64,000 bases of DNA from Takakia lepidozioides (lineage: Eukaryota > Plantae > Bryophyta), in NCBI GenBank assembly GCA_030704615.1, contig CM060733.1, positions 2,356,001-2,420,000 on the forward strand, in the 5' to 3' direction. Each line of letters opens with the position of its first letter. Position 1 is the first letter of the stretch. Made by a program: the position numbers and the translations under genes. Below are positions 6,131 to 33,355 of the stretch, piece by piece. The notes under the pieces were generated by a model that made no database searches, was not told where the DNA came from, and was given only the letters and a program-made list of their open reading frames with translations.

Positions 6131-6138
6131 TAAGAACC

Positions 6139-6164
6139 CTATTTTAACTAATTCTGGACTTTTG
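6139..6164 (+). repeat. Left terminal inverted repeat
   Basis: CTATTTTAACTAATTCTGGACTTTTG is the exact reverse complement of 24984-25009. Confidence 0.92.
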
Positions 6165-6689
6165 GCTTAAATCCGGACCAAACTTAATATGTATTTGAAT
6201 TAAAATTAATTCAAAATTTGTTAATAATATCTTGGATAGTAATGTGTGATTGAACTTTGTGAAATTACAAGTGATGTCATACTTGCTTCAAAATGTAACA
6301 TATAAGATGTCTATTTGATATTGAAGTGCTTGTGAAGTTGTAGTGTAACTCAACAATTCATTGAACGTCAACTGGGAAGTCGAATGATGTAATATTACAT
6401 TATGTTACAATCACGATAAACAAATGTGTCGAATCGAACATGGGATAGACTCATAGTACTCTACCATACTTGATATAAGTTGATAGTAATTTTGATTGAA
6501 TCTTCATGTTCATAAGCACAATATTCATAGACAATGCCATTGGAATGATGTTTTGGGTGTGAGAAGGGCAGTAAAATATTAAAATAGCGTGAACATTAGG
6601 AAGATGACCTACTAGGGCAGTAAAATAAGGTTTGGGGTGTAACTAGATATATTAAGTGCAATAAGGTCCAAGTTTGTGGTGACTCGGAG

Positions 6690-7810
6690 AAGGGTTTAGG
6701 GTTTTAAAGGGTTTAGGATAGAAAAAGAGAAACAAATATGGACGACTCTAAACCTCTGTAGAATGGAAAAATGTAAGGGGAATTTGATATCCATGTAATC
6801 ATTCTATCATACGTTATCCAACTTGAAAATTAAAGAAAACATTAAGAGAATGATACAAATTTTACAAGAGGTAACATGGTAGTACAATAAGGTTTGGAGT
6901 TTATTATAAGTAGGGTACTACACTAAGGTTTTTGGTATATGGTAAAAGTAATGGTTTAAGGTGCTAAGGGTCACGCTTAAGCTTGGGGTAAGGATTATTA
7001 AGGGAAGGATAAAGGGAAGGGTAAGGGTTTAGGGTTTGGATTTCGGGTAGAAAGGGACAAACAAATATGGAATACTCACACATGGTAGTACAATAACTTG
7101 GTTTGGAGTGTAAGTAGGGTAGTACACTAACCTGGTTTTTGGTATATTATGGTAAGAGTACTAATGGTTTAGGGTAGTAAGTGTCAGGCTTAAGCTTAGG
7201 GTAAGGATTAAGGCCAGGGTAAAGGAATGGGTAAGGATTTAGGGTTTGGATTTAGGGTAGTTCAAAGGGACAAACAAATATAAAAGACTCACACATGGTA
7301 GTACAATAACTTGGTTTGGAGTGTAAGTAGGGTAATACACTAACCTGGTTTTTGGTATATGATAAGAGTACTAATGGTTTAGGGTAGTAAGTGTCAGGCT
7401 TAAGCTTAGGGTAAGGATTAAGGCCAGGGTAAAGGAATGGGTAAGGATTTAGGGTTTGGATTTAGGGTAGTTCAAAGGGACAAACAAATATAGAAGACTC
7501 ACACATGGTAGTACAATAATTTGGTTTGGAGTGTAAGTAGGGTAGTACACTAACCTGGTTTTTGGTATATGGTAAGAGTAATGGTTTAAGGTAGTAAGTG
7601 TCAAGCTTAATCTTAGGGTAAGGATTAAGGCCAGGGTAAAGGTTTGGATTTATGGGAGTACAGAAAGGTTTTTGGTATATGGTAAGAGTAATAGTTTAGG
7701 GTACTAAGTGTCCGGCTTAAGCCTATGGAAGGGTTAAGGTAAAACGAAGGGCAAGGACTTAGAGGTGATGATAAAGGTATAAATGGACAAACAAATATAG
7801 AAGACTCGCA
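6690..7810 (+). repeat. Subterminal tandem repeat, ~210-bp unit, G-run/TTTAGGG-rich
   Basis: CTCACACATGGTAGTACAATAA recurs at 7076, 7288 and 7498, with degenerate copies near 6875, 6700 and 7790. Confidence 0.88.
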
Positions 7811-8179
7811 CTCACTAGAACGAGACATTGCAAAAAAACATTTAGACCGGATTAGAAAAGAAAGAATCTAGGGGTTGTGCCAACATTTTTTTTTTTTGGG
7901 TGCATTGTCTGTTTTGTAAGCCAGAACCCCCATGTCACGAATATATGTAGATGAACAGAATGTACAGTAGTGCAGAGTCCAACACGGCAGAAAGAAATAG
8001 ATGAACGTCCACTGCCCACTCGAGGTTCATTGCGACAGAAAAAAAAGACAGGAAGGATTACCCAACGCAAACACGAAGGGAAAGAAGCGTAAATAAATTT
8101 TTATATCTTAAAATGAAAGACCGGAAATAACCTCAACATTTAGTCCATGGATGGAAAATGGTTCGCAAGAAGGAAACCT

Positions 8180-11100
8180 TCAGGTATCTGGCTGAAGGTT
8201 AGCAACCTCGAAATTCGCGCGCGCCTTCACTGCTTCCACCGCTGTAATTCTCTTGGTGCTATTTCTTGTCGTATTATTTCGTGGCGGCATTGTCCACACG
8301 ACATTGTTCACGTGGATCCATTGAGCAAGATCTGACGGGTTGTACTCCCAAACTTTTTGACCAACAGTCCTTGTACCTCTCAAAGTCTGAGGGGTTACCT
8401 CATTTCTTCTGTCTCCACCACTCCACCTTCACTTTCTTAAAATAAGGATCTTCCCTTTCTCGGATGACATCTGAAATTGCCATTCCCATCCAGACCGGGC
8501 ACGTCGTTGGGTCATGAGGGCGAACGAGCACAAAAAACCGTTTCTCAATATCCTTGAACGGATTCAAGGGTATCCTTGGATGCTCACACCTAGGGCCACA
8601 GTAAGGTTCTGGAACTTCATCCTCATCTTCCATATCTTCCAGTATCTGTGGCTGGATGCCATCCCTCCGATGGTTTGAGGACCAATTTGTTTTCAGCCAA
8701 AATCCCTCAAGAAGCTGAATACGATCCGGAATGTCCTGCATTGGCTTATCAAGTTCGGCGAGAATATTTCCCCAGTATTGGTCATATTGTTCCATCACAC
8801 CCCAGTAATGATCGTCAAGCAACATTCATTTGGTCCAAAAATCTCTGTATTTCTTAATACCATTTTTTATGAATGACTGTTTTTCTGAGGAGTCGTCCCC
8901 GACTCCCCATATCGGTCTTCTTGGAACGACATCTAGTTCTCCTTCAGGGAGATATGGAGTCCCATCAGGATTGGACTTCCACATCTTAACGCTGGAGTTT
9001 GTAGGAAGCCACTCCGAATCAGCAGCTGACTTCTTGTACTTTATAACGGGCCAGCCATCCGCATCCTTAAAAACTCGAAAGACGTGCATCTCTGAGATCC
9101 CCACCAAAGCCTCCTTTCCATCATGAATACAACCCTTAACAAACTTCTTGAAGTCGAGAACCTCCTGTGTGATTTGAGGAATGAATTGCATATCTTAGGA
9201 GATCATGAATGACCTCATCAAATCCGGAAGAATGTAGGTGCTGCGTTCCTTTAGCTTCTTCGAGAGATAGCTAAAAAATCCGTCAATATCCTCATGGGTG
9301 TGCCCGACCATGAGAAAACCAAGCTGGATCTCTTCAAAGACATCTTTGGCAGTGAGGAGGGATAGGAAAGCAAACATCCATCTGTTCTTATTGTCCTTGG
9401 AGGAGTTGTCCATCTACAAATAAAGTCGTCTAGGAAGTGGTCGAGCACCACGTTTATCGTGCGGCTTGCAGGGTTTCAGAGCCTCCAAACATCTCGATTT
9501 ACCTCTCATGAGCGTTTCAAAAAAATCATTTTGAACTTCAGTGTCGAAAATGTTCCTGGCCGGCATGTCGGCTTTTCCAGTTGACGCAGGCACCGAGCCA
9601 GCAACCCAATTGTGAAGTTTGAATTGTCTTTCCAGAACTCAAGAGAAAATTGAGCGTAAGCTCCATCTCCGTGTCCGTGCGTAACCATTCCTGTCAATGA
9701 GACAGGCAACTGACCCAATCCGGAGATCATCTTGTTCGTAGTCTGTAGCCTCGGAATAGCCGTTTTCCTATGATCCATATTATCATGAATAATACATAGG
9801 AACTCCTCCGGAACCATAACGGACTCATTCCTCCAGCTATGGTGCAGCCTTCTGCATGACTTTTGATGCCTCAAGTGCAAATCAAGCGCCCGCTTATGTG
9901 CGACCTGTTCGGAACTCCTCTTAATCGACTTCTTCATCAAGTCCTTGAACATCTCGCATTCTATGCACTTAGCAAAGGTGCTTCCTATTTTCCGAACCTC
10001 CACGTTAGGAAATATTCGATTCCGTATACGGCTTATAGCTAGCTGCGAGACCCCTTTCAAACCGAGCAGTGTGTTTGTCTGCACCCCAACTCCCCAACAA
10101 TGTCAACGTCCACTGGGCAGTGGAGGTTCTACAAAGTGGAAGAACAAGGAAGCATGATAGCATCAAAAAGAATAAAATCATCCACAGTATTTTGAAAAAC
10201 GAAAGGGGACAACGAATAAAAGTCACCTCGTTGGACTCCTCTCGAATTCTCTTCCAGTTCATTTCGGGTGGCAAAATTCTCAAAGTATCCCGACGTCCCT
10301 CTCCAATGCAACGTGTTTTGTGAGGCATAAGGTCAGTATTGGCATTGATAATGGACATAATGTTCCCCTCTGCCTGGAGTGTCCCTAGTCGCGGCCGCTT
10401 GACGCCACGATTTCCGTGGAAAGATGACAAACAGCCCTCTTTACTAAGCTTTTTGTACTTCATGTACGTTGACCTTCCAATTCCGTGTATTATCCACCAT
10501 GCTTTCTCACAAACATCAACACCTTCTATCGTAACATACCACCTGCGCGATGACCCATCCATAATGTGAAGTCGTTTTGAAACATTCAATCCAAGTTCTC
10601 TCCTCTCATCGAATGACGAACCCCAAAATGCAGTACGAATTGCCAAGGTTTTTCTCCAATCAAAATACTGGCAGCACTGAAGCTTGCAACAAGGTTTGCT
10701 GCTCACCGACCTCACTTCATCCAAAGTAAGATTTTTCTTGCATTTTTTTGAGTCCTCCATATTGGATGGATTTTTCTTCCTAGTAAAATGCTTGTATGTT
10801 GCTTTCAATACGCCTGTACCATGGTCGTCATTCTCCATGTCACTGCATGATCATAGGAAATTTTCGAGATCAACGGAGAGTATCCGGCCATTTTCAAGAA
10901 GTCTTGTTTTTGTTAACTTCACAATCGACAAGACTCTCCAAAGATTGTTCTGGTGACCAGAACCCCAACATCGTCCTCTCCAAATTTGTCATTTGGAATG
11001 ATCTCGTTAGGAATGCATGCCTGAATTCGGCCTTCGAACAGGCCGTTTCCGTCCTCCCCAAGAAGAAGACACTGCAAGTTTCTCCAACATTCTCTCCCCA

Positions 11101-11480
11101 GACCTGCAGACAGATCCCCCCTAGTTTCACCGTTGGACGGAATATCATTGTTTTCAGTGCTTTATCCTTGATAATCACTACCTTCTGTGATGGAATGACA
11201 TCCTGGGTTTCTCAGGGATGATGAATCCACAGTTTCATGCGTGCGAACACAGGACACGTCCCACACAATTGGAGTCCTAATCGCCTCCTTCAATGTGTCA
11301 GCATCCATGTGTCGATAAGGTAGAGGACAGGAGCCGAATGCGTCATCACAAAAGATCGGGGTAACTGAAATGGTGGACGAACACAAGTGGTGTCCGTGGC
11401 AAGTTCCATCCCCAGAAACATTCAGGCAATCTCCTGAGGCAACAACTGAAGGAGATCCAGGAAGCGACAGAAACACCCTT
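8180..11480 (-). pseudogene. Sola1/DUF7869-type DDD transposase, intron-containing, with stops and frameshifts
   Basis: CC..QCCQ and C..C cysteine clusters; IIHDNMD, MDNSSKDNKN and GFLMVGHTHEDID catalytic-type motifs; introns near 10080-10228 and 9414-9500; 5' limit approximate. Confidence 0.8.
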
Positions 11481-14400
11481 TGGCCTACTTGGAACCCATG
11501 AATTTAATAACCTCCACTGGGCAGTGGAGGTCCAGTAAAATCCTATTACTGGACTGAAGATTAACTGAAGGAAAGAAAGTCTTGCCACCGAAAGGAGAAA
11601 CTTTAAGTATAATTTTTTCGACTATTTTGAATGAGAAAACAATATGGATTGAAAAAATAAAGTCAATGTTTGGATCTACACTGGGACTGATAAAAAACAA
11701 TTGGAATTAAATTGGAGTATGAGGGCGGAGTAAAGACTACATCTATCAGAACTGTCAGATGAAGTCACAAATGCCAACCTCCACTGGGCAGTGGAGGTTG
11801 GATGATATCTGTTGATGAAATCAACCACATGGATGAACAATGGATAATGAAGAAGCCCTATGTAGATGAAAAAGTGATTCTATGGATGGATGAATAATAA
11901 TGTGGCGACTGACCAGTGGAGGTTTGGGAGTAACTTTAGACAAACAAAAGTAAGTTTAGCTGGTGCACATGGAGAGTACACAAAAAATTGAGTATCATAC
12001 TATCCTACGTGAGAAATGTGCAGTTGACACCTGAGACTAAGGAAGCAGGGAGAGACTCAGAGGCTGCTTCAGAAGTACCCTATGGGCAGAGTGGTGCAGG
12101 ACAGGCAAAGAGGTACACGTTGTCCAGAGGTGCAGGATGTCCAAAGAGGTGCGTGAGAGAAAAGAAGCAAGTGAGAGGTTCAAAGTGGGAAGTTGGTGTT
12201 GTGTGGATTCGGACGTTATATAGAGGTGACATGTAACTTTCATCTTTTAATCGCTCCAATGGCAGTGTGGTATGCTTTCTCTCCCGGATCGATTGTGGCC
12301 ACCGTGGATTAAGGCGGAATTGAACGGCTTATTTCAACTCGCGAAATCTCGGCTTCATTGAAAGTGTGCACAATTTTCCATTTATTGACAGCAGCCATTG
12401 TCACATTAATTATGGAACAAACGATAACGGCCGCGATCAGACTGAATTCTATCGTACTTGTACGTTAGTAGGACTACAAGTCTGGCATCATTATCGTGCG
12501 GCTCTGACAGCAGACTCTGGAATAAGCGTGAAGGATGTCGATTCTGACAAGTGGCCTGGAGAAATGAGGTCAGGCGGCTAATCGCCACAACTAATTCGGG
12601 ACTGCACATTAACAATCGATCATTATAATTAGCTGGGATGAATCCGGAGGTGAACCATAAAGCACTTTGAGATTGTTCTGTTTATATTTATCGTGCTTTT
12701 ACAGTGAATAAAACACTTGGGCGGGGCGGGGCATTACATGCCGGCGCATTGCATTGGACAGCGAGGGCGGTGCATTACAGGTGTGTGGAATGCTCTGTCG
12801 TGCCTTGCTTGCTTGCACATGTTTAATGTAGGGATGGACCCCTCGTGTCGGGTATCCCTCGATAAATGGGCAGTCCCTATGGTGGCTCTGGACCTTAAAT
12901 CGAGGAATGCTCAACACGAGGGGCCATCTACTATCCTTAAAGCCGTATGTTGTCAGGGAATATTGACGCCTGGCGGCTAACAGCCGAAAGTAATTGTGGA
13001 CGGCTCAATATAAGACAATGATTATACAGTGTGACGAATCCGTAGGTACAGCATTGTGTCCTCTGGCAGATTGAGTTCGAAACGACTGCCTAGGCGTGTC
13101 ACGTGGGTGGTTACATGTGCGTTTGGGGCGTGGGTTAAGGTTTGTTGGCTTCGAATCTATTTTAAGATTTTTGTAAGCGTGAGGGTTGCAGAGTCTGACC
13201 AATGGCGTCATTACAATCATTTCGTCCTTTTTTCATTCGTCTATCCAGTCGTCTGTCCAAACGTGTGTGCATTCGTGGAACAAAAGTTGAACTAATTTCA
13301 TCTGTGTGGATTGACAGTATTAATGTTAGTTTGCGTGGATGGGGCAGAACATCCATTTGGGCCGCGCGACCGTTCGATTTTGGACGGAGGCGATGGTTCA
13401 GATCATCCTTGAAGGTCACTTATAAGGGGTGCGCTCTTTGAGCCCGGCCTTTGGGCTTCCCATTTTCTACGCGTAAGCGCTGCGCGAGTGAGAGCTTAAC
13501 AGTTGAGAGAGGAGAGCATGAAAGAGAAGAGTTTTGGAGCTTGTTTTGCAGCGACTGGACACTGGAGCGTGGAGAGAAAGAGCAGACTTGGCCGAGTGCA
13601 GAGAGAGGAGAGAGTGAAAGGTGAAAGAGTGAAATAGGCGAAATTTGAAGAGCGGGGAGGAGAGACCGGACAGTGGCGAGTGGAGATTGCCGAGTGTAGA
13701 GGCGAGAGCACAGTGCAATTACCGGCAGGCGGAGGTGCGGAAGAGAGTATCAAACGAAGGACTGTGGTTGCAGGGGCACCAAAATGGACGGCACAAGCAG
13801 GTACCATTCTCTGCTGCACTGCACTGTCTTCAGTGCTTCAGTCCGTGCTTTAGTGCACATTAGGTTTCTGTTTCATTATTTGCTTCGTTGTTTGCTTCAA
13901 TGCTGTTTCATTCTCTGTCAATTCATTTCACTCCTGCTCCATTCTGTGCTTCAGTGCATTCCTGCGTCATTGCTTCACTGTTGTTTTTCAATTCAACGAT
14001 GGTTTGTAGGGTGGTTTTGTGTGCAATTGGGTTTGTGTGTGCTTGTTCTGGTCGATTAGGGTAATGGTTTAGGGTTGCGGGAGATTACCGTGCTGGTTGT
14101 ATTGCTTGTTTTGTTCATTGTGGTGGTTTATTGAGGACAGTGGTTTCGGAAATGCTCGGATGTTTATTTCTCAACCGTTTTCTTGATCCCCAAATCCAGC
14201 GTTAGTTGATGCATTTCTTCCCATTCAAATTCGATTCTGAATGGAAATTTTTATTTCTTATCCAATTATGTCGAATTCGGCAATTCTGAAAAACCACGAT
14301 AGCCTAGTCTACTTGTATTCTACAGTAGACATATGCTAACAGTAGGCTTCGTGCAGGCCAGAGTAGAGTATTCGTAGACCCATGTCATGCACATGAGCAA

Positions 14401-17400
14401 CCAGAAACTGGAACCTCCACTGCCCAGTGGAGGTTCGCGTGAATTCTGTATGCGGAAGCTGAAAGGCATTTTTTTAAAGTAAGGATGAAATCGGATAATT
14501 ACGGAAAATTTGAAATCAGTTTGAGACGATGTGGGAACGAGTGATGGAATCATATGTGTAACATTGTAAGTGTGACACATACTTTCCAACGAGACTGGGA
14601 TACGATAATTGGGAACCTCCACTACCCAGTGGAGGTTCGATATTTCTTTGGGTCAGCCAGTTACACACTCTGATTAGTTTTTGTGTCAGAATGAGAAAGA
14701 GGAACGAGGGTGGGGAACCAGTGTCTGACGATGAGTACAAGACAGCCAGATTAAATTGGAGCAAGAGACGGTGTTTGGTAGACGTGAAGGAAGCGGACCG
14801 TCCAGATCAAAAACATGGTGTTTCGGAACCAGATGAAAAATCCAGTTGGGGGTCTACCGAGCCGAACAAAGTGTCTATCAATGACGAAAATGTGACTGTA
14901 GAATCCCCGCGGAATGCATCCGAATCTCCGAACAATACACCTGAAGTCATCTGTAAGGATACCCTGGCGGAAATAAGAGAAAGCGTTCATGTAAACAATG
15001 ATATCAACGGATCTCCTGCCTACTCCCAAGATTATCCGACATACACCCCTTCAGACTATTCCCCAGACACATTGGCGGCGATACGAGTGACCGTTTTTGG
15101 ATATCCAGCATCTCCGGGTTACTCGCCAGCATCTCCTGAATCCACATCAGGATCTGAAGGATATTATCCTCCAAACTTCCTCCTGGACACTGAAACGAGC
15201 GGGGGAGTCCTGGAACTACTGGACGTCTCCGGATCTCCAGGGTACTTCCCTACGTTTCCTGATAGTATCATCGGATCCCCAAAATATACCCCTCCAAACT
15301 ATTCGCCTGATACACTCACAGAGATACGGCCACAAATATCTCCAATCAATCCCGGGATGCAATCTGGTGGTGTAGGATGTCTTCTGTTACAACCAAACAC
15401 AAATTCATTAGATAATCAAATAACATGATCTCTCTTACTAGCATCCATCATTCCAGAAATGAGAACCTCCACTGGACAGTGGAGGTTCGTATGTACAAGT
15501 CTTTCTACATGAAATGGGAAATCCTCCATATTTTACAGATGTTGAAGAAAAAAACTTTAATGAAAATGAGGCTCAGGAGCCATTGAGTACATCATCCTGA
15601 ACAGGACTAATCTACAATAGAAATCTTCGAACCTAATTCGTCCAAAATATACTAAGGAACTTCTCGCACTATATTCAGACGATTCTAGATTATATAACCA
15701 AGAACTATATAATGCTCCATCGTGCCTGTCGGTACACCTCCTGATCACAAACTGTCTTTTCATTTCAGAAGTCTTGGAGTAATAACAGACTTAAAATACG
15801 CAGAAGCTCTCGATATAGAGCTTGAATCTGAAAAGGAAAACCCGATGTTGATTTTGTTCCTGCATAAGGATGCGAGAACCCCCAGGACGTTTGGTTTCAA
15901 AGTGGAGGTGGGTCGTTTGAACAAGTCGTTGATGAGTAAATGTGTTGCACTGGGTTTTAGATTTCCAGACGAGGGCTCAGTATTTACAGACGTAGGTTTG
16001 TCGAGGACCTGGAGTATTTTTCTGGATCTTCTGCACGCAATGGGGAACGACATTCGCAAGCACTACAAAGAAGCATCAAAGCCGAAGAAGGGAAAACGCA
16101 AGTCGTCGACAGCCGGCAATGATAACAATGAGGCCGGGACTTCCGCAGGAAAGAAGAAACAGAAGGAGGATCAGGATCCAGCATTGATGTCAGATAACAA
16201 GAGACCTAAAGCTGGGGAGATTTTTGACAAGGAAAAATGCGAGAAGATGGAGGAGAGGCTCACGAAGGAATACAATGATGTATTTCCATTCGGATTCGAG
16301 AGTACCTTCCTTGTGAAGGTTTCCATGATGGAACTAGCTCCAAGAAGCATGGTTTACAGGCCGTTAAATATCAAGCATAAGGACGAAGTGAAAGCGCGAC
16401 TCTTCCAACTTCATTTGTTCGACTCCAAACATCCGGTGTATCTTGCGCCAATCAACCCTTCCAATCCTGAGAAGATTGCTTCATCGTGACCGAAGCAATG
16501 GAAGGAGATGGACGTATCAAGGTTCTTCGTAATTGGTGGACAACACACCATCGTGGTAACAAAGGTAATGGACTTCATTTCCTCCCAGACCTCTCTTTTA
16601 ACGAACCTCCACTGGGCAGTGGAGGTTGGTGTTGAACTACAAAATTGGATATGTCCCCACACTTTCAACTTTCTCACCCATTTTACATTAACTGTAGCAG
16701 GAACTTCTCGAGGATCTTGCCGACAACGAACTAAAGGAATACTACCGGGAGTGGCTTGCGAAGATTGTATGGTCTACCGATGAACAAAGGCTCCTGAAGT
16801 TGTCAAAACTCCTCAACGATCCCAATAAGGCGCAAAAGTTTGATACAACAATGCCGGAGAAAGTTGCGCATGCGCAAATGTTATTCAACCTGAGGGGGAA
16901 GCCAAAGAAATACAACGATCACACCACAAAGTCCGAGACGAAACAATGGAAGGTATGCATTTATGGAATCAAAATCTACTATTCACATTCATTTTATGCT
17001 AAAGAATACTTCTGTTGTCGGAGTGACAACTAATTTATCCCTGAATGAATGTGCAGGAGTTCATGTTTGCCTGTCATTTGATACTAGAAATGGGTAGCAT
17101 TAAGGAGGCAATGGTCCTGGTACTTTGCGACGACGACGTTTGGAAGATCTGGGAAGATGTTTTCAAAAACTGGGAGCAGGGAAAGCTACTCGACCCGCTT
17201 GGGATACAGTACAAGGGTGAACAGCAACAGCTCACGAAATCTGCTATCGCAAAGCTGCAAGGGTTGAATAGATGGCAGCTGATAAAAGTTGCGCAGAAAA
17301 TCTTGGACCTGAAATTGACCATTCGAGATTACAAAGGTCAAGACAAATCAATTCAAGGCATGAACAAGTACATAGATGACATGAAAATGCGCCGGTTTAT

Positions 17401-20073
17401 TGTCGACAATGTGATGGAAGTGTTGGGGTGGCCTCGGAGGAACAAACAGTGCACGGAACCGTACACTAAGGACGAGTGGCGTGAAGTGAAGAGAAAATAC
17501 CACTTCAATAAGGCAGAGTTCTCAACATTAAAAGACAAACTGGGGACGGATTACATCCAAAGCAAGATCAAGATGAACATGGAGACAAAACCACTCACGG
17601 CCGCTTTTGTTAAGTACGTCTCCTCCATCAAGAAAGCTTATGAGGATAGAGAGGATGCCATGGCGATTATTTCAGCGAGTTTCAAGACTCATTACGCTAT
17701 CATGGGTGAAGAAACAAAATTCGCCGATGCCAAGTCCCGTTTGCGACTCGCACCGAAGAAACGGTTTGACAACATAGCGATGGTGTTCGTCAATACAGTT
17801 TTTGAAGACAACTCTATCGTATTTGAGTCCAACGATTATGTGAACATACTGGAGGCCTTTGTGGCTTAGAAAATGAACACGAGTGCTTTTGTTTTCTTCT
17901 CGATGCAACCGTCCTCGGCCAATCTGGTCTCCTACATCCAAAATGGTCCTGGAAGAACATCGTATCTTGTCCGTCAGGGTTTTTATGTTCCGGGAGAGTA
18001 TGAAAATATTTACAAAAACAACACGATAATGTAATTGAATTTAAATTAATTTTAAGCCAATAAATAGGTTTGCACTGCCTTTCATTGGGGGTTTCTGGCA
18101 CGTATCGATTTTGTTTTTGGCTCAATTTTGTTCTGCGGCTTCCAGCATCCCACCACTACTCCCCCGCCAAAATTCGGACCAATAAAAAATGCCCCCAAAA
18201 AAAAGTGTTCTCTTCGCTCACTATTGCATAACTCTCTATGAGGAGTGCATGAAGTTGAACACAAATCAAGTTTGGAGTGCAAAACTGTGGTTTTGGGTCC
18301 AAATGAATTATGTTCGCTCCCAAATTGGGCACGCACGTTGCATATGGCTACATTACACGCCCCATTCAAAAACCGAATGAAAAAAAATCGTGAGCACGCG
18401 AAACACAGTCCAACAGGTCCCAAAGCAATAGCAGATCTCGGACTGTACTGTGTCTGGACTATGTTTTTGCAGCGACACTTGAGGAGATGAAGAATCCGGA
18501 TGAGCACATCTCTACCGTACTGTTAATCGAGCCAATACAGCCGATTCTGGAAGGGCCCTCTGAGAAGCCATCAGCTTTTGAAGAAGAGTGCAGGACTTAA
18601 AATCATGAGCTACGAGCTGACACATACGACTATTTGGCCTCCATGTTTTGTCGAGACGGGATGTCCGCTGTCAACATCTTCGGAGGCGTGATGTTGACGT
18701 ACGCCCTTCATGTAAGTGTAAAACCTTTTTGCATTTTAAATACGAATTTTACATTTTTGATCGAACACGTCCTCTATTTTACTGACTGGGTTTATCTGCA
18801 GGCAAGAAACATTCAAGTGTTTGACATCAACCACTCAACCAAGAAAAAGTTTTGCAAAGGAAAAGTTGAAGCGAATTTTAAGAAGCTTCAAATTGAGAAT
18901 GACAATGTTGCTGAAGAGGTTGACGGCGGAGACGATGATGAGGATGAGGAGGAGGAAGATGAAGACTTGGAAGAAGGAGGCGGACATTCCGAACACGTAG
19001 AGGAGGACGAGGGCATCGATGGTAACGGGGACAACGAGGGCCACGATGGTGACAAATGCAGACCATTGGGAGGCTGGACACCTAGATGTGATTCAGGACT
19101 TCAGAACTCAGTCACAGGATGGTATTGAGAACATCACCCAAGACGTTGCGGTCCACAATGTCGTGATTCTGGATGGGGATTCGTCAAGTTCAAGCGAGAG
19201 AACTAAGAGTAATCCTGCTTCACCATCAAGGGGTGCGGAGGCGAGCTCAATCGAGGTGCGCAACAATTTTATTGGGAGTGCAGACGACTGGTTCAAACCT
19301 GTAGAAGGGGACGAGCCGGTGCCAATGTCCCCGTCTCCCGCGAAAGAGATGGTAGAGAGAGCGAGGACAAAGAGCCCGTGTCCCACAAAAGATAGCGGAC
19401 ACAGAGGGAGGACTAAAAGCCCGTCCCTCGCAAAAATGGACAGTGGTGACAGAGCCAGGACTAAAAGCCCGTCTCCAAGAAAAAACAGCGGAGGCAGAGG
19501 CCAAACTCAGAGCCCAACTCGCTCTCAAAGTGTCTCCCAACATGTCAATTTGGATGTAGGTAACGAATGACACCTGGAGATTTATGGTGTCTTTAAGCAT
19601 TATAAATGGAACAAATTGTGTGTATTGCATCTGCTTGTGTTCTGGTTGTGTTTTTGGCAATACCTGATCTGTATCTTAATATTTTCCACCTTCTTGAAAT
19701 TTACATGTGACTGACGGTAAGAAAACTCGTATAGATCCATGAACGGAAACTGGAGGAAATCACACAAACTCGGACAGAATCCATCGCGACTCAAACAGTG
19801 AAGAGGCAGGTGGACTTAACAATAAGGGCCAGCTCAACTGATCCGGTCAAACAAACAACCTCCACTGCCCAGTCGACGTTGCGAGATGGAGGAGATGAGC
19901 TGGAGATGGTTGTTGCTCACCGCGAAGGAAAAGAGAGCAAGCAGCAACATCAGCAAATTCGGAACCCCTCCCCGAAACGGGTATACACCTCATAACCATC
20001 TTAGCTATGTTCTTCTTTGTCCTTCTTCTAGTTTTCAAAATAAATTAATTGTTCTGTTATTCCACAGGATGAT

Positions 20074-20810
20074 ATGATTCACCCTCCAATCGACTATCAC
20101 AAATCTGTGAACCCACAGGATTGGTATCGCCTCTCTGAGGGACCGAAAGGATCTCGACCAGGATACTACGTCCTGGTTCTTGACGTCGGTTACCTTGGTG
20201 AGGTTTACCTCCGAGATGGCCCGACATCCCCTCCCGCAACCCATCCTTGTGTGTGCGCTGGAAAATTCAAGCTTGCAGTCCGAAATGGGTTGGACGACTT
20301 CCTGAAATGGGTCCTTAAGCATTTTGAGGTCTACTTTTGGAACACTGGACCATTAGAAAATGTCCTGGATATAGGGCTGGCTTTGTTTGGAAGAAGGTTT
20401 TACAAGGTCAGGGAATTCAGCAATGAGAACTGCGTGAAGCATAGACAGACGTTTAGTGCCGAATGGCCCAAATATCCGAAAGCGCCAATATATCTTAAAC
20501 GTCTCTACGACCTTTTCACTGTAGACGACCCTGTAGCGTACAAATCAAACACACTTCTTATCGACACTGTAGAAAATATGTATAAGTCGTACTTGAATCC
20601 AAAGTCGCTCGGTCTCTTCCCTCCAAAATATAAAGCGCTCGTCGACCCATACAATGACAGGTTTCTTCTGGATGAACTCAAACCGCACCTGGAAGAGTTG
20701 CGGTTATCCGGAAAAGATGCTGATATATTCAATGTGGAAAAACCCATAGGATGTCCACCGTATAATGACCCAAAGGTCAAATGCCTCTTGCTATGGGATT
20801 TGCAGTGGCA
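20074..20810 (+). CDS. FCP1/NIF-like HAD phosphatase domain 1 (exon of cargo gene)
   Basis: VLVLDV, VRNGLDDFLKWVLKHFEVYFWNT, YLKRL, SNTLLID motifs; DxDxT degenerate. Confidence 0.75.
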
Positions 20811-20984
20811 GGTTTATCTTAGAAAACAAAAATTTCCTAACGCTTCATTGGAACAGTTTGAAACGTAGATGGCTGCTCTAGATTTTCATGAACCTCGACT
20901 GTCCAGTGGACGTTGCTCCCAATGTCAATCCTGTCCTTGGTTTATCTTGATTACCACCTGAGTGGATGTATGAATTTCTCACAG

Positions 20985-21715
20985 ATTGCAGCACCAGTTT
21001 CTCCAGTTGCGAAAGGATTGCGCTTGAATTTTTTTGACCTGAATGGAGTTTTGTGCAAAGTCTTGAAGCACCAGAAAGCTACAGTGTCCCCCAAATGTCC
21101 GAGACAGACTACATGATACCAGCTCTTGTTGGATTTCGACTTGTCTATAGGCGGGAAAAATATCGTGAGATGTGGACAGAGTTGAACAAACATTTCCGTT
21201 TAGGTATATGGAGCTGCATGATGTACAAGAACTTGCAGCCTATACTGGACTTTATGCTTCGGGGTCTTCCTCAACCGACATTCGTTATGTCTCAGGAAGA
21301 TTGTATCTCCTGTCCTACTTCTGTCCACCCTCAATTTATATCAGGATACGACCCGCCGAGTCTGTTCTTGAAGCCATTGATGATGGTCTGGCAAAGATTT
21401 GGTGGTCAGTACAACCTGAGTAACACTCTACTTATTGACGATTCAGCTATTAAGTGTGTGTTGAACCCGCCTGAATCCTGTCTGATTCTAAAATCGTTTT
21501 GAATCCGTTGAGACGGACTCTTGCTATCTCCAGAAGGTTCTTCAGATTATTTGCTTGAAATGAAGAAATCTCGCACCGTTTCCAGTTATCTCAGGGAAAA
21601 GAGGATAGGACTTAAGCTTTGTCAGAATGTTTCCACCGATCCCAAGTTTAAGCCTCTCCTGGATTATGTTGATGATTCTAATTACGGGAATCTCCGATAT
21701 GATGCTTCAAAATAA
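20985..21715 (+). CDS. FCP1/NIF-like domain 2 (frameshifted)
   Basis: FFDLNGVLC, HFRLGIWSC, FVMSQEDC, FLKPL, SNTLLIDDSAIKCVLNP. Confidence 0.8.
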
Positions 21716-23346
21716 AGATTTTATTGATCAACCACGTCTGTGATTCAATGTTTATTTTTGATTGGTTTTTTTATAGGTTGTATTGTTTTTCTAGAAAAAC
21801 TGTTGTGTACTGTGATTTCCTTTTCAATATGAATTGACATGGAATTGTTTGCTATTTCCTAGTCTCATCCAAGCGTTTCTCCACCCCATACCATCCCGAT
21901 CCTCTGAGATACAGGCCTTCTCCGAAACTCGTCTCGGGGGCTTTTTCAAATCCGACAACCTCCACAGTGCAGTGGAGGTTATCCCGTGTCTGTACATTGA
22001 CCTTGTAAGTTCATTTCTGCAGGTTCATGGCGATGCTGCTGATGCCAACTTCTTGTCGGGACCTCCATTGGAATCCTCCATATCAGAAATTCGTCTACAG
22101 AGGGACAACATTCACACTACTGTTGAGATTTCTGTCATCGACGGTGAAGCATCATCCAGGCACTTGGCTTCCCTTCAATTGCACGACCCTCTTCTTCAGT
22201 CCATTCCTGAAAATGTTGTTCTGTCGCATGATTGTTTAGGATTGAAATGTTGAAGATGGAAGACAACTTGACAAATGTGCAGGGGATTTCGTGGACCTCA
22301 CTCTACAATCCTCACCCTCCATGTTAAGTGTCAATGGTGTGAAATCTACCTCAAGAATGTCATCCGTTGAGGACGCGGCTGAGGCTGCGGCTCCGCAGCA
22401 CAATGTTGCCTCTCTTCCCTCCTTCTCTCCCAAGCAAGAAGGTTGGACATCCCAAATCAGAAGGAGTCAGGTAAAATTACTTATATCTGAATTCTAACTC
22501 GTCCTTTTGTTTTCCTTAGTACTGGGTCTGATGTTCTTGTTTTACTCCAGGCCAGAAAATCTGCGGATTGTGACCTTCCTGTCAAACGACGTCTTCATTG
22601 GAAATCTGTTCCGAGGTAATCCCTTCGTTACGTGTGAATTCCATTCAGGATGTGGAGTGCTCAAGGGACAATTTCCATTCCGTTCCCCTTCTCCGAAACC
22701 CTTTCGACGAGGACAAGGACGAAACTTCAATTGCAACTTCTGGGCTTCCCGACCCTGCAGTGTTGGCGTAATGTTCTGCACCGAGGAAGCGGAATAGGGT
22801 CCCCAAACCATTTCCATCTCTTCTATAAATCGGTTCCACCGGAGAGAAATCCTTCGTCAGAGACAAAACAGACTCGAGGAAGAAAAGGAATACCTCGGAC
22901 ATACCGGGGTCTCGTCAAAACACGTCCATTGGGATGCCAAGCCCGCCAGCGAGACTTTCCAATAAGGCGACATCGGTATTATTCGATATCATTTCTCCAC
23001 TTTTTTCTTTTTTCTGTTCGTTTGGTTATGCACTAATTAACTCCATCTTTTCTCAACAGGCGGGGATGCAGAACGATACCTTCATCAATTTCCCTCCGTA
23101 CAAGGTACTTTCCTGAACCTCCACTTGGCAGTCGACGTTCCTCTTCTTAGCAATATTCACTCTCCTCTTGAAACATTCCAAGCCCACAACATTGTGCAGT
23201 ATTTTGCCATTTTCTGCACAATCGTGTTGATCTTCCATACACTCAATCATTCTGGGTTGTGGGTATTTTTCATGGCAGAAACACTAATGTCAGTGTGTGA
23301 TTAACCTGCTCAGGATAACTTTGTCTCTCATCCTTTACATGCAACA

Positions 23347-24061
23347 GTGTGGAAGAGGAAACTGATGTTGTTAATTTTGAGTGTCAACGGACTCCTCTGC
23401 TACCGGCCACCCCCAACCGGCGGTGCACTGTTTAAGGAGAAATTTCGTTTCAGGAATGTGACACTTCAAGTTCCTGACATACGGTTTGTGGTGCCTCGGC
23501 CTGGAGTCTTGGAGTTTCTGGACCTTGCATTGAAGCATTTTCACGTGGCCATTTGGTCATGTGCCGATAGAGGTGTTCTTTGTAGGATGTTGGAGAGCTT
23601 CGTCCCCAAAATAACGAAGAAGTTTTGCTTCATATGGTCTGCTGAGGATTGTAAGGATACCACCGGTTATATCAGGCCCGGGATGAAATATCTCGTAAAG
23701 GATATTCGAAGTGTTATTGTCAGGTACCCTGGTAGACCGTTTGCTACGCAGGGGCAAATACTTCTTGTAGATGATGAGCCATCAAAAGGCCTGCGAAACC
23801 CACAAAATACTGGATTCTTCCCTTTCTCATTCAAGCCTTCACCAAACGGATTGCATGACCGGGATGATATGACAAAAGCAGTGTGGCCATATATATCGGA
23901 GTTGGCTGGAGCTTCAACAGTCGTTGATTACATTAGCGAGAACCGGGCAAAGTGTTCTCATAAGCCTATTGGTCGAGACCATGTTTGCTGGGCCTGGTAT
24001 GGAAGATATCTTGATCCTCGTATTTGGATCCCACAACAAAAAGAACTTGATTACCTTGGTA
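23347..24061 (+). CDS. FCP1/NIF-like domain 3
   Basis: LILSVNGLLC, PRPGVLEFL, HFHVAIWSCA, FIWSAEDC, LVKDI, ILLVDDEPSK. Confidence 0.8.
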
Positions 24062-24983
24062 GGTACGTGGATCCCACTCTTCTCTTGTTTGTTCATAATT
24101 TGATTTTCCAATTCTTTTGCAGCTGCATTTGCACTCTTACCTCAACATATCCATATGCAAAACTTCCACTTTGGGCCTAACATTTGTCATTTCCATCGCC
24201 TCTCCCCAGTTACGTTCAAGGAACGAATTCTAAAAGAGGAACAAGAGTTGCGTGATTGGGAAGAATGGCGGGCGTGCCGGGAGGCTTCAAGGGCATCAAG
24301 TAGAGTTGGCAGTAACATTTCAGATGACAATGTCAGCCGGTTTCACCTTCCTGAAAGTATCTCTGTGTCTTCTGGAGCGGAGACCGTTGCAAGTGGCTGT
24401 GGTAACCAGAGGCGTCTTTGGACACATGCCTTGACTGCGAGCCGTTTGGGAGGAGACTCAGTATTATTAATGAGTTAGTATAAGCCGTAACGGTTCTATG
24501 CCTTCAGAATCTATGGCTTGTATGGCATTAAGTCCATGAACGGATGGACAGTTGACGTTCATTTTTCTGTTGGTCCATCGCCTTCAATGATATAATCTCA
24601 AATAAAATATGAATGTTTCATATCATCAATCAGGTCCCGACAGACTCGTTTTTCCATGTTGTCCTCTTCATCACATGCCATCATTGTTTCATATTTGGTT
24701 CTGCCATTATTCCATGTTTGTTTTTGTATGTCACTTTGGATATCGGAGCTCTCATCATTGTTTGATTCATTGCATCCTCCCATTCCTTTTAATGAACGTC
24801 AACTTGGCAGTGGATATTCATCTAAGACCACAATACATACTTGTATTTTTGCGTAGAATGTGTGGAGGATTACATAATTTGTTGTTATATAGTGCACAAA
24901 TAGTCAAATAATTATAGATATATCTCTTTATTTCTATTATAGATTATAATTATTCATATATCTTGTATTATTTTTGGACGAAA

Positions 24984-25009
24984 CAAAAGTCCAGAATTAG
25001 TTAAAATAG
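24984..25009 (-). repeat. Right terminal inverted repeat
   Basis: CAAAAGTCCAGAATTAGTTAAAATAG. Confidence 0.92.
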
Positions 25010-25014
25010 AGTTT

Positions 25015-25187
25015 TAGTGATCCACTGGATCATCAACCAACCCAAGATCTCGCAACGTCAGGGCACTCTGAATTTCTGAGACATCGTCTAGGGCAATGGC
25101 TGAAAGACGAGCTATTACCTGGCCCTTGCGAATGCGAATGGGAATTCGTTCTGGATTAGCAACCAGCAAGAAGATGACCCTAGCGAT
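25015..25187 (-). pseudogene. Outer gypsy pol piece (dUTPase-like/linker region)
   Basis: Minus strand reads IFLLVANPERIPIRIRKGQVIARL, continuing the dUTPase-like segment broken at ~36152 and leading into the RT at ~6130. Confidence 0.7.
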
Positions 25188-25230: not shown

Positions 25231-25916
25231 GTACCGCCGCTACTGTCGGTTCCTCAACGTTCTGGGCGGCCCAACTTGTCGGCACCAGAGGTGCTTTTCC
25301 ATAGACCAATACGAAAAGGAAAACTCCCGTTGCGGAGTGTTCTGTGTTATTATAACAGAACTCTACCGCGTCTAAGTGTTCCACCCAGTCTGATTGGTCT
25401 GCCGACACGTAATTCCGCAAGATCTGCTTCACTACGGAATTCACTCTTTCCGTTTGGCCGTCGGTCGTAGGTCGGAAGGCGGTGCTCATCTTCAGCCTCG
25501 TCCCCATCTTCTTCCAAAGTGTCCTCCAAAATTTACTCGTAAACTTTGGATCGCGGTCCGAGACAATATCCTTCGGGACTCCATGATGTTTTAAGACGTG
25601 GGCGAAGTAAAGTCACCTTGTCTCTTGCGCCGTTGCCGTCTCCTTGGTGGGGATGAAATGGCCCATTTTACTGAACCTATCCACCACCACCATGATTGCA
25701 TCGAATCCTTTTGATAGCGGCATAGCAGCCATGAAATCCATCGAGACGCTTTCCCAAGTCCCCTCTGGAATCGGCAAGGGTTGCAACAGCCCCGCTTGCT
25801 TTTTGTACTCGCTCCGGTTTTGTTGGCATGTGGTGCATGTCTTGACATACTTCTCTGCCTCCTCCCTCAGTTTGGGCCAGAAATACTCTTTCTTCAAGAG
25901 TGCCGCAGTGCGCTTG
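25231..25916 (-). pseudogene. Chromovirus integrase fragment (left half of the target copy)
   Basis: Inverted near-copy of ~30017-30699. Confidence 0.92.
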
Positions 25917-26640
25917 TGTCGCGGCCCTTTGCCTTGAGGGCAGGGGGTCGGGACACATGAGGGGCTGCCCTTGTGGTGGGGGCAGCGGCAGCGATAGGTA
26001 TGGGGGGCTGAAGCACCCTTGAGTGCCCAAGGCACTCAAGGAGGCGGAGGCGCTCACTAGGTGGAGCCCCGCACACCGGGTTGCGGTGGAGGTGGCTCCA
26101 CAAGGGGTGGTGGTAGCTTAGTGGGACTTAGTGGGGGTGGCATAGGACTCACCATGGGGTGGAGACCTCGAAGTGGGAGTCGTGGGGAGTCTTGGGACTC
26201 ATCACGGTCCATTGGGGCCGCGGTGAGTGGGCCAAGACTCACCGCGACTCACCACCGGGAGTCGAGGGTTTTCGTGGTGGTTCGCCATAAAATGGCATGG
26301 CTGGTTATGAAACCCCCGCGGACAGCTACAGAAGTATATATAGGGAGTAGTAACCCCGAGAACGGTGCAAGCCCGTTGGTGACCAAAAACTAGTGAGTAA
26401 GCGAGCGAGCCGGAAAGCGACCAAAGAGTGGGGAGCTGTTCCGGACTGCCATCTACCAAAGGGAATTCTCCTAGTCCCAAATAGGTGGAGGGTTTAGAGG
26501 GAAGCGGAAGGGGACCGTTATGTCCCGGTGAGCAGCCGAAACTCCAAGTTGGCCCGGCGGCCAGGTTGGGAGTCAGGCGCGCGCATCAAAGCGAGTAACT
26601 ATGACTTGAAGGGGAGTTTACCGAATTGAGGTGTGCGACA
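25917..26640 (+). repeat. Chromovirus 5' LTR (724 bp)
   Basis: Direct repeat of 32162-32884. Confidence 0.97.
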
Positions 26641-26642
26641 TT

Positions 26643-26654
26643 TGGTATCAGAGC
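26643..26654 (+). promoter_or_regulatory. Primer-binding site (tRNA-iMet)
   Basis: TGGTATCAGAGC two bases after the 5' LTR. Confidence 0.92.
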
Positions 26655-26695
26655 TTAGAGTTCAGTACGCGATCGTCCTTGGGATTGGCCTCATC

Positions 26696-29600
26696 ATGGG
26701 GTCGGGCAAGCCGAAGCGAAAGCGGAACGGCCCAAAAGATGATGATCCCGGTGAGCCCGATGGGGGCGACGTGTCACCGAGGCGGCCGTTTGAGGAAGCG
26801 ATTAATGTTTCCGAAAACGAGGCCGCTCAGGAGCGGGAGGAATCCGAGGAGTCGGAGCCCGAGGAATCTTTGAGAGCTCCGACAAACCAAGAGATGCCTC
26901 CCATGCCGGCAGCCTTTTGGGAAGGGTTGTTGGCGCAGTTTGGCGGGACGTTGAAAGACGTGTTGAAGGCGGCTAATGCCACTTCCACCAAGGCAAAGTT
27001 TAAGGTGAAGCCTAAGGAACCCGGCACCTTCGAGGGCGTTCGAAACCGGAAGGCACTCAACACCTGGCTCCTGGAGCTAGAGCAGTACTTCCGGGCGGCC
27101 AAGTTGAGTGACGAGGATCGGGTGGAAGTGGCTCCCACCTATTTGAGGGGCTATGCTCAACAATGGTGGCAGAAACGCCTTCACGACCGAGGCCCAAGCC
27201 CGGAAACCTTGAACTGGAGTGAGTTCAAGGAATTGATGAAGAGACAGTTTGTGCCCCTCAACGCATCCTGGCTTGCCCGGGACAAGATGAGGAATTTGAA
27301 GCAAACAGATGACATTCGGGGGTATGTCCAGGCTTTCAATGTGCTGTTGCTCGAAGTCGCGGACATGGCAGAACCAGAAATGGTCTTCAACTTTGTGGCG
27401 GGACTGGCCCCATGGGCTAGGCGGAAGTTGGAGGAGAAGCCACCCAAGACTTTGAACGAGGCAATTGAGAGAGCTGAATGTTTCTCGGATGTCCCTAGGG
27501 GTGAGAGACAAGGCCGTACGGAGCTGAACCACAAGAAGACCCGGCGGGAAGGTGACTCCTCCCGACCGGAAAAGAAGTGGGATAGGCCACGCGGCGAAAA
27601 TGGCACGTGGAAATCGAAGGGAGGTCCTTCACACGTCAAGGCGGCACCCGGTGCTTCGAAAGGAAAAGCGGGTGGAGCGACTTATGGCGGACAGAAGGCG
27701 ACCTTTGATGGAGTGTGTTTCAATTGCGGGGAGCCCGGGCACATGGCCAAGAAGTGCACGAAGCCCCGACAATTGAACATGACTCGGGCGACCACGGAGC
27801 TGTCGGAAGATACCATCAGTCGCTTGGTGGAAGCGGTGGTCGCCAGGACTTGCAAGGTAGGCAAATTTTCTTGTGAGTTGTATCAGGAAACTGGCGCCTT
27901 ACGAAAAGGGAGTCAGTTATTGTTCGTGGATGGGATAATATCCGGAACTAATGTGTCGTTGTTGGTGGACACAGGAGCGTCGCACTCCTTCATGACGCCG
28001 GCGGCGGCGCGAAAGTTGGGACTCCCGACAAGTGACGTGGGGGCCTCTATTGAGGTGCGCTCTGCCAAAGGAGAACCTCAGTTGGCGACAAGGTTGGCGT
28101 TTGATGTTCCTCTTCAACTGGGGAGTTGGGAGGGACGTGAGAACTTCACTATCTGCGAGATCGATGGAGTGGATCTCATTTTGGGAATGACCTTTTTGAG
28201 CAAATCCGGAGCGGTCATAGATGGCCGCAAGAGAGTAGTCACGCTGCCATGTGGGAATGGTGGCGAGGTTTTACGAGTGTCGGAAACGCCCAAATCCGTG
28301 GGAGGGCGAATAAACCTTCTATCAGCAAAGGAGTGGGCCGTGGAGGAGACACACGAGTCCCAGTTTTTGCTTTACATTAGAGAAGTGAAAGGAGAAGGCG
28401 ATGGGGAGCCGAGCCCAGATTGGATCAAGGGGATTTTGGAGAAATACCAGGATGTGATGCCGGAGGATTTACCAAGCGGCTTGCCACCGCGAAGAGGAGT
28501 TGACCACAAAATTGAGGTGATACCGGGATCGGAACCGCCTGCCAAGGCGCCCTACCGGTTGAGCCACAAAGAGTTGGTCGAGCTGAAGACTCAGCTCAAA
28601 GATCTAATGTCAAAGGGGTACATCCGGCCGAGTAAGTCACCTTACGGAGCCCCGGTGCTATTTGCAGACAAGAAGGATGGGACGCTGCGGATGTGTGTCG
28701 ATTACAGGGCTCTGAATAAGGTGACTATCAAAAACCGGTACCCTTTGCCAAGGATCGACGACCTCTTCGATCGGTTGGCAGGAGCGAAGTATTTCAGCCG
28801 GATCGACTTGCGCTCCGGCTATCACCAAATTCGGGTGGCGGAAGGAGATGAGGAGAAGACCGCGTGCAGGACAAGGTATGGTTCATATGAGTTCTTGGTG
28901 ATGCCTTTTGGGCTCACCAATGCACCAGCGACATTTAGCACGCTGATGAACAGCCTTTTCCAGGAGTGGTTGGATGACTTTGTGATCGTGTACATCGACG
29001 ACATCTTGGTGTACTCGAAAACAAAGGAGGAGCACCTGGAGCACCTCAAAAGGGTGTTCCAAAAATTGCGAGAAGGGAAGCTGTATGCCAAAGCTTCAAA
29101 GTGCGAATTCGGGGTCACAAAAGTGGAGTTCTTGGGGCACGTGATTACACAGGATGGGATCAAAATGGATGACAGAAAGGTGAGGGCGATCTTGGACTGG
29201 GAGCCTCCGACTTCGGTCCCGGGAGTGCGATCCTTCCTAGGACTCGCCTCCTATTACCGGAAGTATGTGAGAAATTTCGCCAAGATCGCGGGGCCGCTGT
29301 CGGACCTTCTGTGTAAATCCAAAGTCTGGGTATGGAACACATTTTGTGGCCAAGCTTTTGCTGAATTGAAGCAGCGGATGACGGAAGCTCCAGTCTTAAA
29401 AATCCCGGAGTTCGATCGTCCGTTTGAGATTCATACAGATGCATCGGACTTCGCAATTGGGGGTGTACTTATGCAAGATGGACGTCCAGTGGCTTACGAA
29501 AGTAAGAAACTGAATGAAGTGGAGCGACGGTGGCCGACGCACGAAAAAGAGATGAAGGCGGTGGTACATTGCCTTGAACTCTGGCGCCACTATGTTGGTT

Positions 29601-32884: not shown

Positions 32885-33355
32885 GCTTGGCTCCGCCGTG
32901 GCCCGCAAGCGGGCTATCATGGCATTCTCTCAAGAGACTATCTCTGCTCCCTCCCTTCAGCACGTAGAGACGCTTTTGCTTATACCGGAGCAGTCCATTT
33001 TGCAAGTGGAATTGCGATTTAACCCCCCTCCTCAAGTCCTGCATCACGGACTTCGCCAGCTCATCCTTCTGGTAAGCCTTCCGGATCTTCCTTTGGAGCG
33101 CCGTCTCGCCCCTGTACACCAACAAGAGCTGCTGCTTTCTACTTAAAGCATCGGCCACCACATTGTCACGTCCCGGTTGGTAATGGATATCCACGTCAAA
33201 CACCGCCAAAGTATCTTGCCACCTAAGTTGTTTTGGGGACAACTTGGGCTGCGTGGCAAAATACTTCACCGTAACATTGTCCGTGAGCACCTTCACTGGG
33301 TTGGAACCAACATAGTGGCGCCAAAGCTCAAGACAGTGCACCACCGCCTTCATCT
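32885..33355 (-). pseudogene. Chromovirus RNase H/integrase-ZF fragment (right half of the target copy)
   Basis: [14 protein letters not shown]...[12 protein letters not shown], inverted near-copy of ~29550-30021; joins 25916 across the GCTTG TSD. Confidence 0.92.

Follow-up and report, generated by a model that had tools for sequence, protein, structure and literature searches.

The stretch of DNA considered here (hereafter, the window) comprises 64,000 nucleotides of the bryophyte Takakia lepidozioides (assembly GCA_030704615.1, contig CM060733.1, positions 2,356,001 to 2,420,000 of the forward strand) and contains a giant Sola1-type DNA transposon, which spans positions 6135-25013 (18.9 kb) and is bounded by 30-bp terminal inverted repeats (TIRs). 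This element carries a transposase gene on the minus strand and, divergent from it, a plus-strand cargo gene for a putative ParB/Srx-like protein, together with a palindrome of 24 bp that recurs along its length and is probably recognized by the cargo product. An earlier note on this DNA had placed the ends of the element at 6133 and 25014, within 2 nt of the boundaries given here. The features that delimit the element, together with its transposase, are the following:

6131..6134, plus strand: probable 4-bp target site duplication, left copy TAAG (right copy TTAG at 25014-25017)
6135..6164, plus strand: left TIR (start AACCC), a 30-nt arm; a related TIR occurs in elements from peat-moss samples
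6907..7642, plus strand: subterminal 210-bp tandem repeat, 3.5 copies, telomere-like and GGGTTTAGGG-rich (repeat analysis)
8183..11476, minus strand: Sola1-type DDD transposase, decayed (stops, frameshift near 9520), with an intron at ~10226-10079 (DUF7869 and motif order)
24984..25013, minus strand: right TIR, a 30-nt arm 97% complementary to the left arm

The termini of the element read AAC...GTT, and the AAC start matches that of Sola1-1_Ec32, a published transposon of the alga Ectocarpus. The flanking TAAG and TTAG can be read as a 4-bp target site duplication (TSD) with one mismatch or as a 3-bp duplication (TAA/TAG), the former being probable by parallel with the 4-bp TSD and AACCG termini of Sola1-1_Ec32. 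Since the DNA on either side reads as minus-strand Gypsy pol, the transposon was inserted into a retrotransposon. The transposase, also reported in the earlier note, matches DUF7869 (E=3e-26) and presents the motif order of the Sola1-1_Ec32 transposase, while its motifs DN..NKN and MVGHTH.D, compared by eye, agree with Sola1-1_Ec32 and not with Sola2-1_Ec32. In publicly available DNA runs from this species, thousands of contigs, 90-99% alike, cover positions 14300-20200 evenly, and the element therefore belongs to a multi-copy family. The present copy is dead, as its several stops, its frameshifts and a foreign insertion of 410 bp attest, a decay that had already been recognized; the stop at 17867 and a frameshift at 19054 are missing from the other genomic copies in those runs.

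The models of the cargo gene were read from the sequence by eye, without RNA, and its exons were searched one by one. The cargo region is composed of the following parts:

14691..15428, plus strand: S/P/Y-rich open reading frame (ORF) with one or two heptads like those of the RNA polymerase II (Pol II) C-terminal domain (CTD); Rpb1 repeat E=0.07, below the cut-off
15769..16564, plus strand: cargo exon with the first half of the putative ParB/Srx-like domain (YRPL, GGQH) and an in-frame stop at 16487; 83 homologous fragments, Atlas neighbours
16701..16952, plus strand: cargo exon with the second half of the ParB-like domain (strand, helix ending in a conserved Asn); alignment with 16 relatives, 53 profile matches
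17057..18027, plus strand: cargo exon with a conserved helical region, then a degenerate region like motif IV of methyltransferases (MTases); the stop at 17867 is private to this copy
18028..18437, no strand: inserted fragment (410 bp) of an unrelated, very high-copy repeat that disrupts the cargo (depth, loose ends)
18438..18711, plus strand: exon whose last part is the MTase motif-I-like segment GMSAVNIFGG; relatives conserve this segment and place the intron identically
18802..19980, plus strand: acidic and R/S/P-rich low-complexity exons (18802-19555 and 19735-19980; ORF reading), with a 48-bp coding tandem at 19358-19499
20068..20868, plus strand: NIF/FCP1-like domain 1, motif I DVGYL (PF03031, E=2e-7), phase-compatible with the upstream cargo exons
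20985..21713, plus strand: NIF domain 2 (DLNGVL), frameshifted (PF03031, E=4e-7), phase-compatible with NIF domain 1 via intron 20812-20984
23348..24180, plus strand: NIF domain 3 (SVNGLL, without the catalytic Asp; PF03031, E=8e-11)

The GT-AG introns 16565-16700, 16953-17056, 18712-18801, 19556-19734, 19981-20067, and 20812-20984 are all phase-compatible, and a single long reading path runs through the ParB-like domain, the helical region, the MTase-like region, the low-complexity linker, and NIF domains 1 and 2. Further introns are predicted at 13801-14689 (the 5' intron), at 23105-23347, and in a stretch ending at 15538, while NIF domain 3 probably belongs to a separate gene. The link from the ORF at 14691 to the ParB-like exons is without phase resolution; CTD mimicry by this ORF is weak, and CTD-like repeats are absent from the relatives examined. 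The inserted fragment reaches a depth of ~100-400x that of the rest of the transposon, with loose contig ends at both borders, and is present in RNA-labelled runs as well.

The peptide on which the ParB/Srx assignment of the earlier note was based is present, split by the stop at 16487 and followed by the intron 16565-16700. The motif order of the domain (YRPL, helix, strand, GGQH, intron, strand, helix, and conserved Asn) presumably parallels, from general knowledge, that of the ParB/Srx N-terminal domain. In most decayed relatives the Arg of YRPL is replaced by His or Cys, as expected from CpG loss. Moreover, the nearest neighbours of the first exon among the features of a language model (Atlas) are DUF3723 (0.94), DUF6551 (0.90), and ParB_N (0.89), the first two of which we take to be ParB-like families. 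Taken together, motifs and neighbours make a ParB fold of the cargo likely, and the helical region in 17057..18027 is a possible DNA-reading part. The canonical cytidine triphosphate (CTP) motifs of ParB are GxxRxxA and ENxQRE (PMC11229316). Neither is found in the cargo, where GGQH, the commonest form among homologues, replaces the first and LNxxN or LNNKD (in exon 2, LNNKD or LNDPN) the second, and no ParA ATPase is encoded among the ORFs of the element. A role of the cargo as a CTP clamp is unproven.

The CTD-phosphatase-like and MTase-like modules claimed earlier have been retained only in part. Three NIF domains are indeed present, but the catalytic motif DxDx(T/V) is not found in any of them, the corresponding segments being DVGYL, DLNGV, and SVNGL; the latter two are kept in relatives, in which DLNGVL is conserved for NIF domain 2 and SVNGVL or NVNGVL occupies the position of NIF domain 3. 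The MTase holds at motif level only. Relatives keep the motif-I-like segment, as NIFGG or SIFGGG, and the intron after it, and in all of these forms, as in the present copy, motif I has no acidic residue; a DPPY-type motif IV, (D/S/N)PP(Y/F), is missing in the present copy and in the relatives, and profile searches with the cargo exons gave no match to an MTase family. The conservation of the motif-I-like segment, along with the predicted N4C/N6A methylase of the Ectocarpus Sola1 accessory protein, would favour an active DNA methylase that writes N4-methylcytosine or N6-methyladenine at or near the palindromes; however, the missing residues and the blank family searches render this explanation very unlikely. 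The CTPase, methylase, and phosphatase motifs are all non-canonical, and from their sequences the MTase-like and NIF modules look like pseudo-enzymes that probably act as binding or scaffold modules.

The palindrome AACCTCCACTG-NN-CAGTGGAGGTT (24 bp) yields 12 matches at <=3 mismatches, all of them between 8004 and 23139 and none in the window outside the element; 100 shuffles gave 0 matches. Three further degenerate or half sites (6364, 11901, and 24795) bring the total to 15, in keeping with the ~14 copies, confined to the element, that had been counted before. The sites, identified by pattern match and without strand, are located as follows:

8004..8027: palindrome 1, 3' of the transposase stop
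10105..10128: palindrome 2, in the transposase intron
11509..11532: palindrome 3, upstream of the coding part of the transposase, 24 nt from an acceptor
11776..11799: palindrome 4, perfect, with a half site at 11914-11924
14412..14435: palindrome 5, perfect, in the 5' intron 13801-14689
14614..14637: palindrome 6, in the same 5' intron
15464..15487: palindrome 7, perfect, in the intron ending at 15538
16604..16627: palindrome 8, perfect, in the intron 16565-16700 within the ParB-like domain
19857..19880: palindrome 9, the only one within a predicted exon
20891..20914: palindrome 10, in the intron 20812-20984
21957..21980: palindrome 11, between the stop of NIF domain 2 and the NIF domain 3 gene, of uncertain status
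23116..23139: palindrome 12, in the intron 23105-23347
6364..6387: degenerate palindrome, ~230 bp inside the left TIR
24795..24818: degenerate palindrome, ~200 bp inside the right TIR

These sites are spread over the whole element in steps of roughly 1 kb and are present in both transcription units. Eleven of the 12 palindromes lie outside predicted exons in an element of which ~52% is coding (p ~0.002, with gene models made by eye), and the DNA that flanks them is unrelated from copy to copy. The 24 arms show 14 departures from the consensus, nine of which are C-to-G changes at two positions, independent in each arm, and two of which are transitions. Perfect palindromes fold as hairpins, and degenerate ones show no more folding than shuffled sequences do (z 0.5 to 1.1), their lost pairing being uncompensated. 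Because of this C-to-G variation at two positions per arm and the lack of hairpin compensation, the palindromes are best read as half-sites of a dimeric DNA-binding protein, and not as hairpins or random decay. Although the location of most sites in introns and the folding of the perfect copies would suit palindromes that act as hairpins in RNA, or that are neutral remnants of local duplication, the uncompensated pairing, the unrelated flanks, and the occurrence in both transcription units make either reading most improbable. The exact palindrome had no match in viral or metagenome contigs, sets to which the host species probably does not belong, hence a search that is not genome-wide.

Relatives of the cargo are carried by 72 loci from JGI metagenomes, which we take from their identifiers to be peat-moss samples; none were found in viral or bacterial genome contigs, nor in phage and plasmid records, and homologue searches with the exon-3 ORF and with NIF domain 3 gave no matches. 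The relatives share exons 1-3, the intron positions, and two NIF domains with the cargo of the window, to which they are 30% identical; 13 or more distinct loci terminate with a TIR closely like that of the window. A divergent Sola transposase is retained upstream of the cargo in some of them (L005, L037, and L025), in L021 and L025 only ~1 kb away. Most of the loci between L014 and L078 with >7.5 kb of upstream sequence have cargo and arrays and no Sola transposase within ~10 kb; relatives lacking a nearby transposase are possibly non-autonomous or deleted forms.

These relatives possess a 22-bp palindrome of their own, ~ATGCCT(A/G)GTG-NN-CAC(C/T)AGGCAT, with a 2-nt spacer as in the window, which is common to well-separated subclades and was found at 112 sites vs 1.25 in shuffles (seed from L005). 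With a decay-tolerant pattern, the 117 kb inside elements yielded 116 sites and the 26 kb beyond the right TIR yielded 0, where 26 were expected. These sites are organized as 45- and 37-bp tandem arrays, some upstream of the cargo and some inside it; they cluster near gene starts and in introns, and arrays lie directly upstream of the ParB exon. The window motif is absent from the relatives and their motif is absent from the window; as read from these sequences, the TIR has been kept while the internal palindrome turned over together with the cargo. A cargo-encoded, sequence-specific binder is favoured because the palindrome of the relatives differs in sequence, agrees in geometry, and stops at the TIR, and binding of the palindromes by the cargo protein appears rather likely.

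In the relatives, the palindrome (L005:8663-9373 and similar) varies mainly as ACG/ATG/ACA and GCG/GTG/GCA, which implies half-sites with CpG; the window consensus is devoid of CpG, and only one of the two lineages might then have methylation-sensitive binding. Telomere-like GGGTTTAGGG-rich arrays are found at the left end of the window element (6680-7750) and also upstream of the cargo in relatives (L002:4330-6060, head-to-head, and L063:2630-4040). L002 was considered as a cassette copy borne by a CACTA transposon and rejected, since the CACTA end at L002:14239 belongs to a nested insertion into the NIF region; this CACTA element (Transposase_21, DUF4218) occupies L002:14239-19954.

According to the mechanism proposed here, the element would encode its own self-recognition factor. 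Bacterial ParB dimers bind palindromic parS, and the ParB/Srx-like cargo dimer would likewise bind the two-fold symmetric palindromes as double-stranded DNA, forming a coat on its own family only, given that the palindromes are family-specific. The MTase-like and NIF modules, their catalytic residues lost, would maintain transcription of the element or prevent its silencing in a binding or scaffolding capacity, a part comparable to that of VANC in VANDAL transposons. The NIF domains would plausibly engage the phosphorylated Pol II tail, judging from the known substrates of FCP1/SCP. We regard this reading as evenly balanced when taken as a whole, and the anti-silencing or transcriptional outcome in particular as tentative. 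Of the earlier proposal, self-recognition by the cargo may stand as the best reading of self-restricted, mostly non-coding palindromes and of a conserved cargo with a lineage-specific palindrome, while the idea that the protein loads and spreads like ParB, whose canonical CTPase motifs are absent, is unproven. It is doubtful that land-plant transposons have co-opted a bacterial-type ParB clamp and use it as a programmable chromatin factor that spreads over the 19-kb element from lineage-specific parS-like palindromes, with dead CTD-phosphatase domains holding or protecting phosphorylated Pol II; if true, this would constitute a new polymerase-directed escape from silencing in which protein and site co-evolve.

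Several results weigh against self-recognition by a ParB-like cargo. Half-domain models, covering the first exon only, reached values of 39 and 56 for the predicted local distance difference test (pLDDT) and had no ParB match in fold searches; PDB, Pfam, PHROG, NCBIfam, and PADLOC searches with the cargo exons were blank; and an hhalign comparison of the cargo with P1 ParB was negative, an attempted ParB profile from P1 relatives having drawn near-identical copies only. Essentially no cargo expression was seen in two RNA-labelled runs, for which contigs only were searched. The covariation of palindrome and cargo that the earlier note had proposed as a check is found, a different palindrome accompanying the 30%-identical cargo; with two lineages compared, it amounts to one event, and the transposase has diverged between them too. 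Finally, transposases are able to act as sequence-specific activators of cognate copies (bioRxiv 2026.08.24.746577). Apart from these results, an RNA-labelled run includes a single contig of 260 nt that matches at ~85% over 16319-16398 of the ParB-like exon, which hints faintly at transcription of a related family.

The activator role of transposases raises the alternative that the palindromes are sites for the transposase, or for a host factor, with the cargo as an independent passenger, the confinement of the motif to the element being expected either way. However, the TIR, presumably the site of the transposase, is conserved, while the palindrome is unlike the TIR and has turned over. Moreover, the arrays of the relatives adjoin the ParB exon, many relatives retain both cargo and arrays although no Sola transposase was detected less than 10 kb away, and algal ParB cargo adjoins inverted-repeat arrays in another transposon superfamily. 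A passenger cargo is, in our judgement, quite unlikely. Somewhat less unlikely is a reading in which the cargo, while bound to the palindromes, acts in the mechanics of transposition or in inheritance, coating, bridging, or condensing the 19-kb element for TIR pairing, or shielding excised DNA, on the model of ParB condensing DNA around parS. The ~1-kb steps, the degenerate sites ~200 bp inside both TIRs, and the giant size of all ParB-cargo elements (17-21 kb in algae) agree with such a function, which nevertheless leaves the three CTD-phosphatase-like domains and the MTase-like domain unexplained; furthermore, clamp sliding requires CTPase motifs that are non-canonical here, and the sites of the relatives are clustered near gene starts and in introns and are not evenly spread.

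Elsewhere in the window, a young long terminal repeat (LTR) retrotransposon at 25915-32884, with 726-bp LTRs 99.7% identical, lies in opposite orientation within an older related copy, giving inverted matches between 25231-25916 and 30016-30699 and between 29550-30020 and 32885-33355. A 303-bp tandem unit (3.7 copies) at 55275-56385 reads like a PLS-class PPR gene of the host, and 62224-62732 contains a 257-bp direct duplication, 87% identical. A small dispersed repeat family (72-93% identity) is found at 1102-1485, 38419-38492, 43292-43565, 44263-44396, and 47422-47835, and 2167-2687 matches 37236-37707.

The closest known system is Sola1-1_Ec32 of Ectocarpus (Dinatale et al. 2025, PMC12477816). 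In this 21.5-kb Sola1 element, a ParB-methylase gene lies on the strand opposite the transposase, and its product was suggested to attach to the very transposon that encodes it and to modify that DNA; the transposase of Sola1-1_Ec32 is matched best by that of the moss element Sola1-1_PPa. The Ectocarpus element and that of the window share the Sola-1 transposase motif order, giant size (21.5 vs 18.9 kb), AACC termini, a 4-bp TSD (probable here), and an opposite-strand accessory gene with a ParB-like part, which in Ectocarpus also has an N4C/N6A MTase domain. In contrast, the MTase part is degenerate here, NIF domains have been added, the TIRs measure 30 bp vs 282 bp, and family-specific palindromes are documented, of which there is no mention in PMC12477816. 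In the red alga Bostrychia, the Plavaka transposon PAG3 carries a ParB cargo beside inverted-repeat arrays, for which self-binding was proposed (Petroll et al. 2025, bioRxiv 2025.02.11.637652). It is likewise a giant DNA transposon with a ParB-like accessory protein and adjacent inverted repeats, but it has an EnSpm/Plavaka transposase, a ParB fused to a 2OG oxygenase, a methylase on another gene, no NIF domain, and tandem arrays instead of dispersed intronic sites.

In Arabidopsis, anti-silencing by VANC of VANDAL transposons is proven, with motifs gathered in introns and non-coding parts that evolve via tandem repeats (Hosaka et al. 2017, PMC5735166), and the 45- and 37-bp arrays of the peat-moss-sample relatives recall the VANC motif arrays. 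Both systems comprise a transposon-encoded accessory protein and family-specific motifs enriched in the non-coding DNA of the element, whereas the VANC motifs are short, non-palindromic, and same-oriented in a Mutator host, and the function of VANC is proven where that of the cargo is inferred. To our knowledge, no ParB, MTase, or NIF domain has been reported in VANC, and sequence-specific self-protection of transposons has been proven in only a few Arabidopsis systems. With bacterial ParB-parS, the element shares ParB-like motifs in the right order and two-fold symmetric palindromic sites; it differs in having no ParA, in GGQH and LNxxN/LNNKD for GxxRxxA and ENxQRE, and in that helix-turn-helix and dimerization domains were not identified.

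The pairing of ParB with repeats, which the earlier note did not recognize as described, was already published for algal transposons (PMC12477816; bioRxiv 2025.02.11.637652), and the predicted architecture fits this algal-type accessory system. A literature search of incomplete coverage returned no description of ParB-cargo transposons in land plants; what is new is the land-plant Sola1 version, together with the pseudo-phosphatase modules and the replacement of the palindrome while the TIR was conserved. In the brown and red algal giants, ParB-like accessory genes stand beside inverted repeats without a defined binding site, whereas two distinct candidate sites (24 bp here and 22 bp in the relatives) for two homologous proteins allow cognate and non-cognate binding to be compared. 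The conserved pseudo-phosphatase domains point, moreover, to Pol II as a target, a possibility not raised in the algal papers. If true, self-recognition by the cargo would carry the hypothesis framed for algae over to land plants and make it easier to understand the persistence of giant transposons in genomes with heavy methylation.

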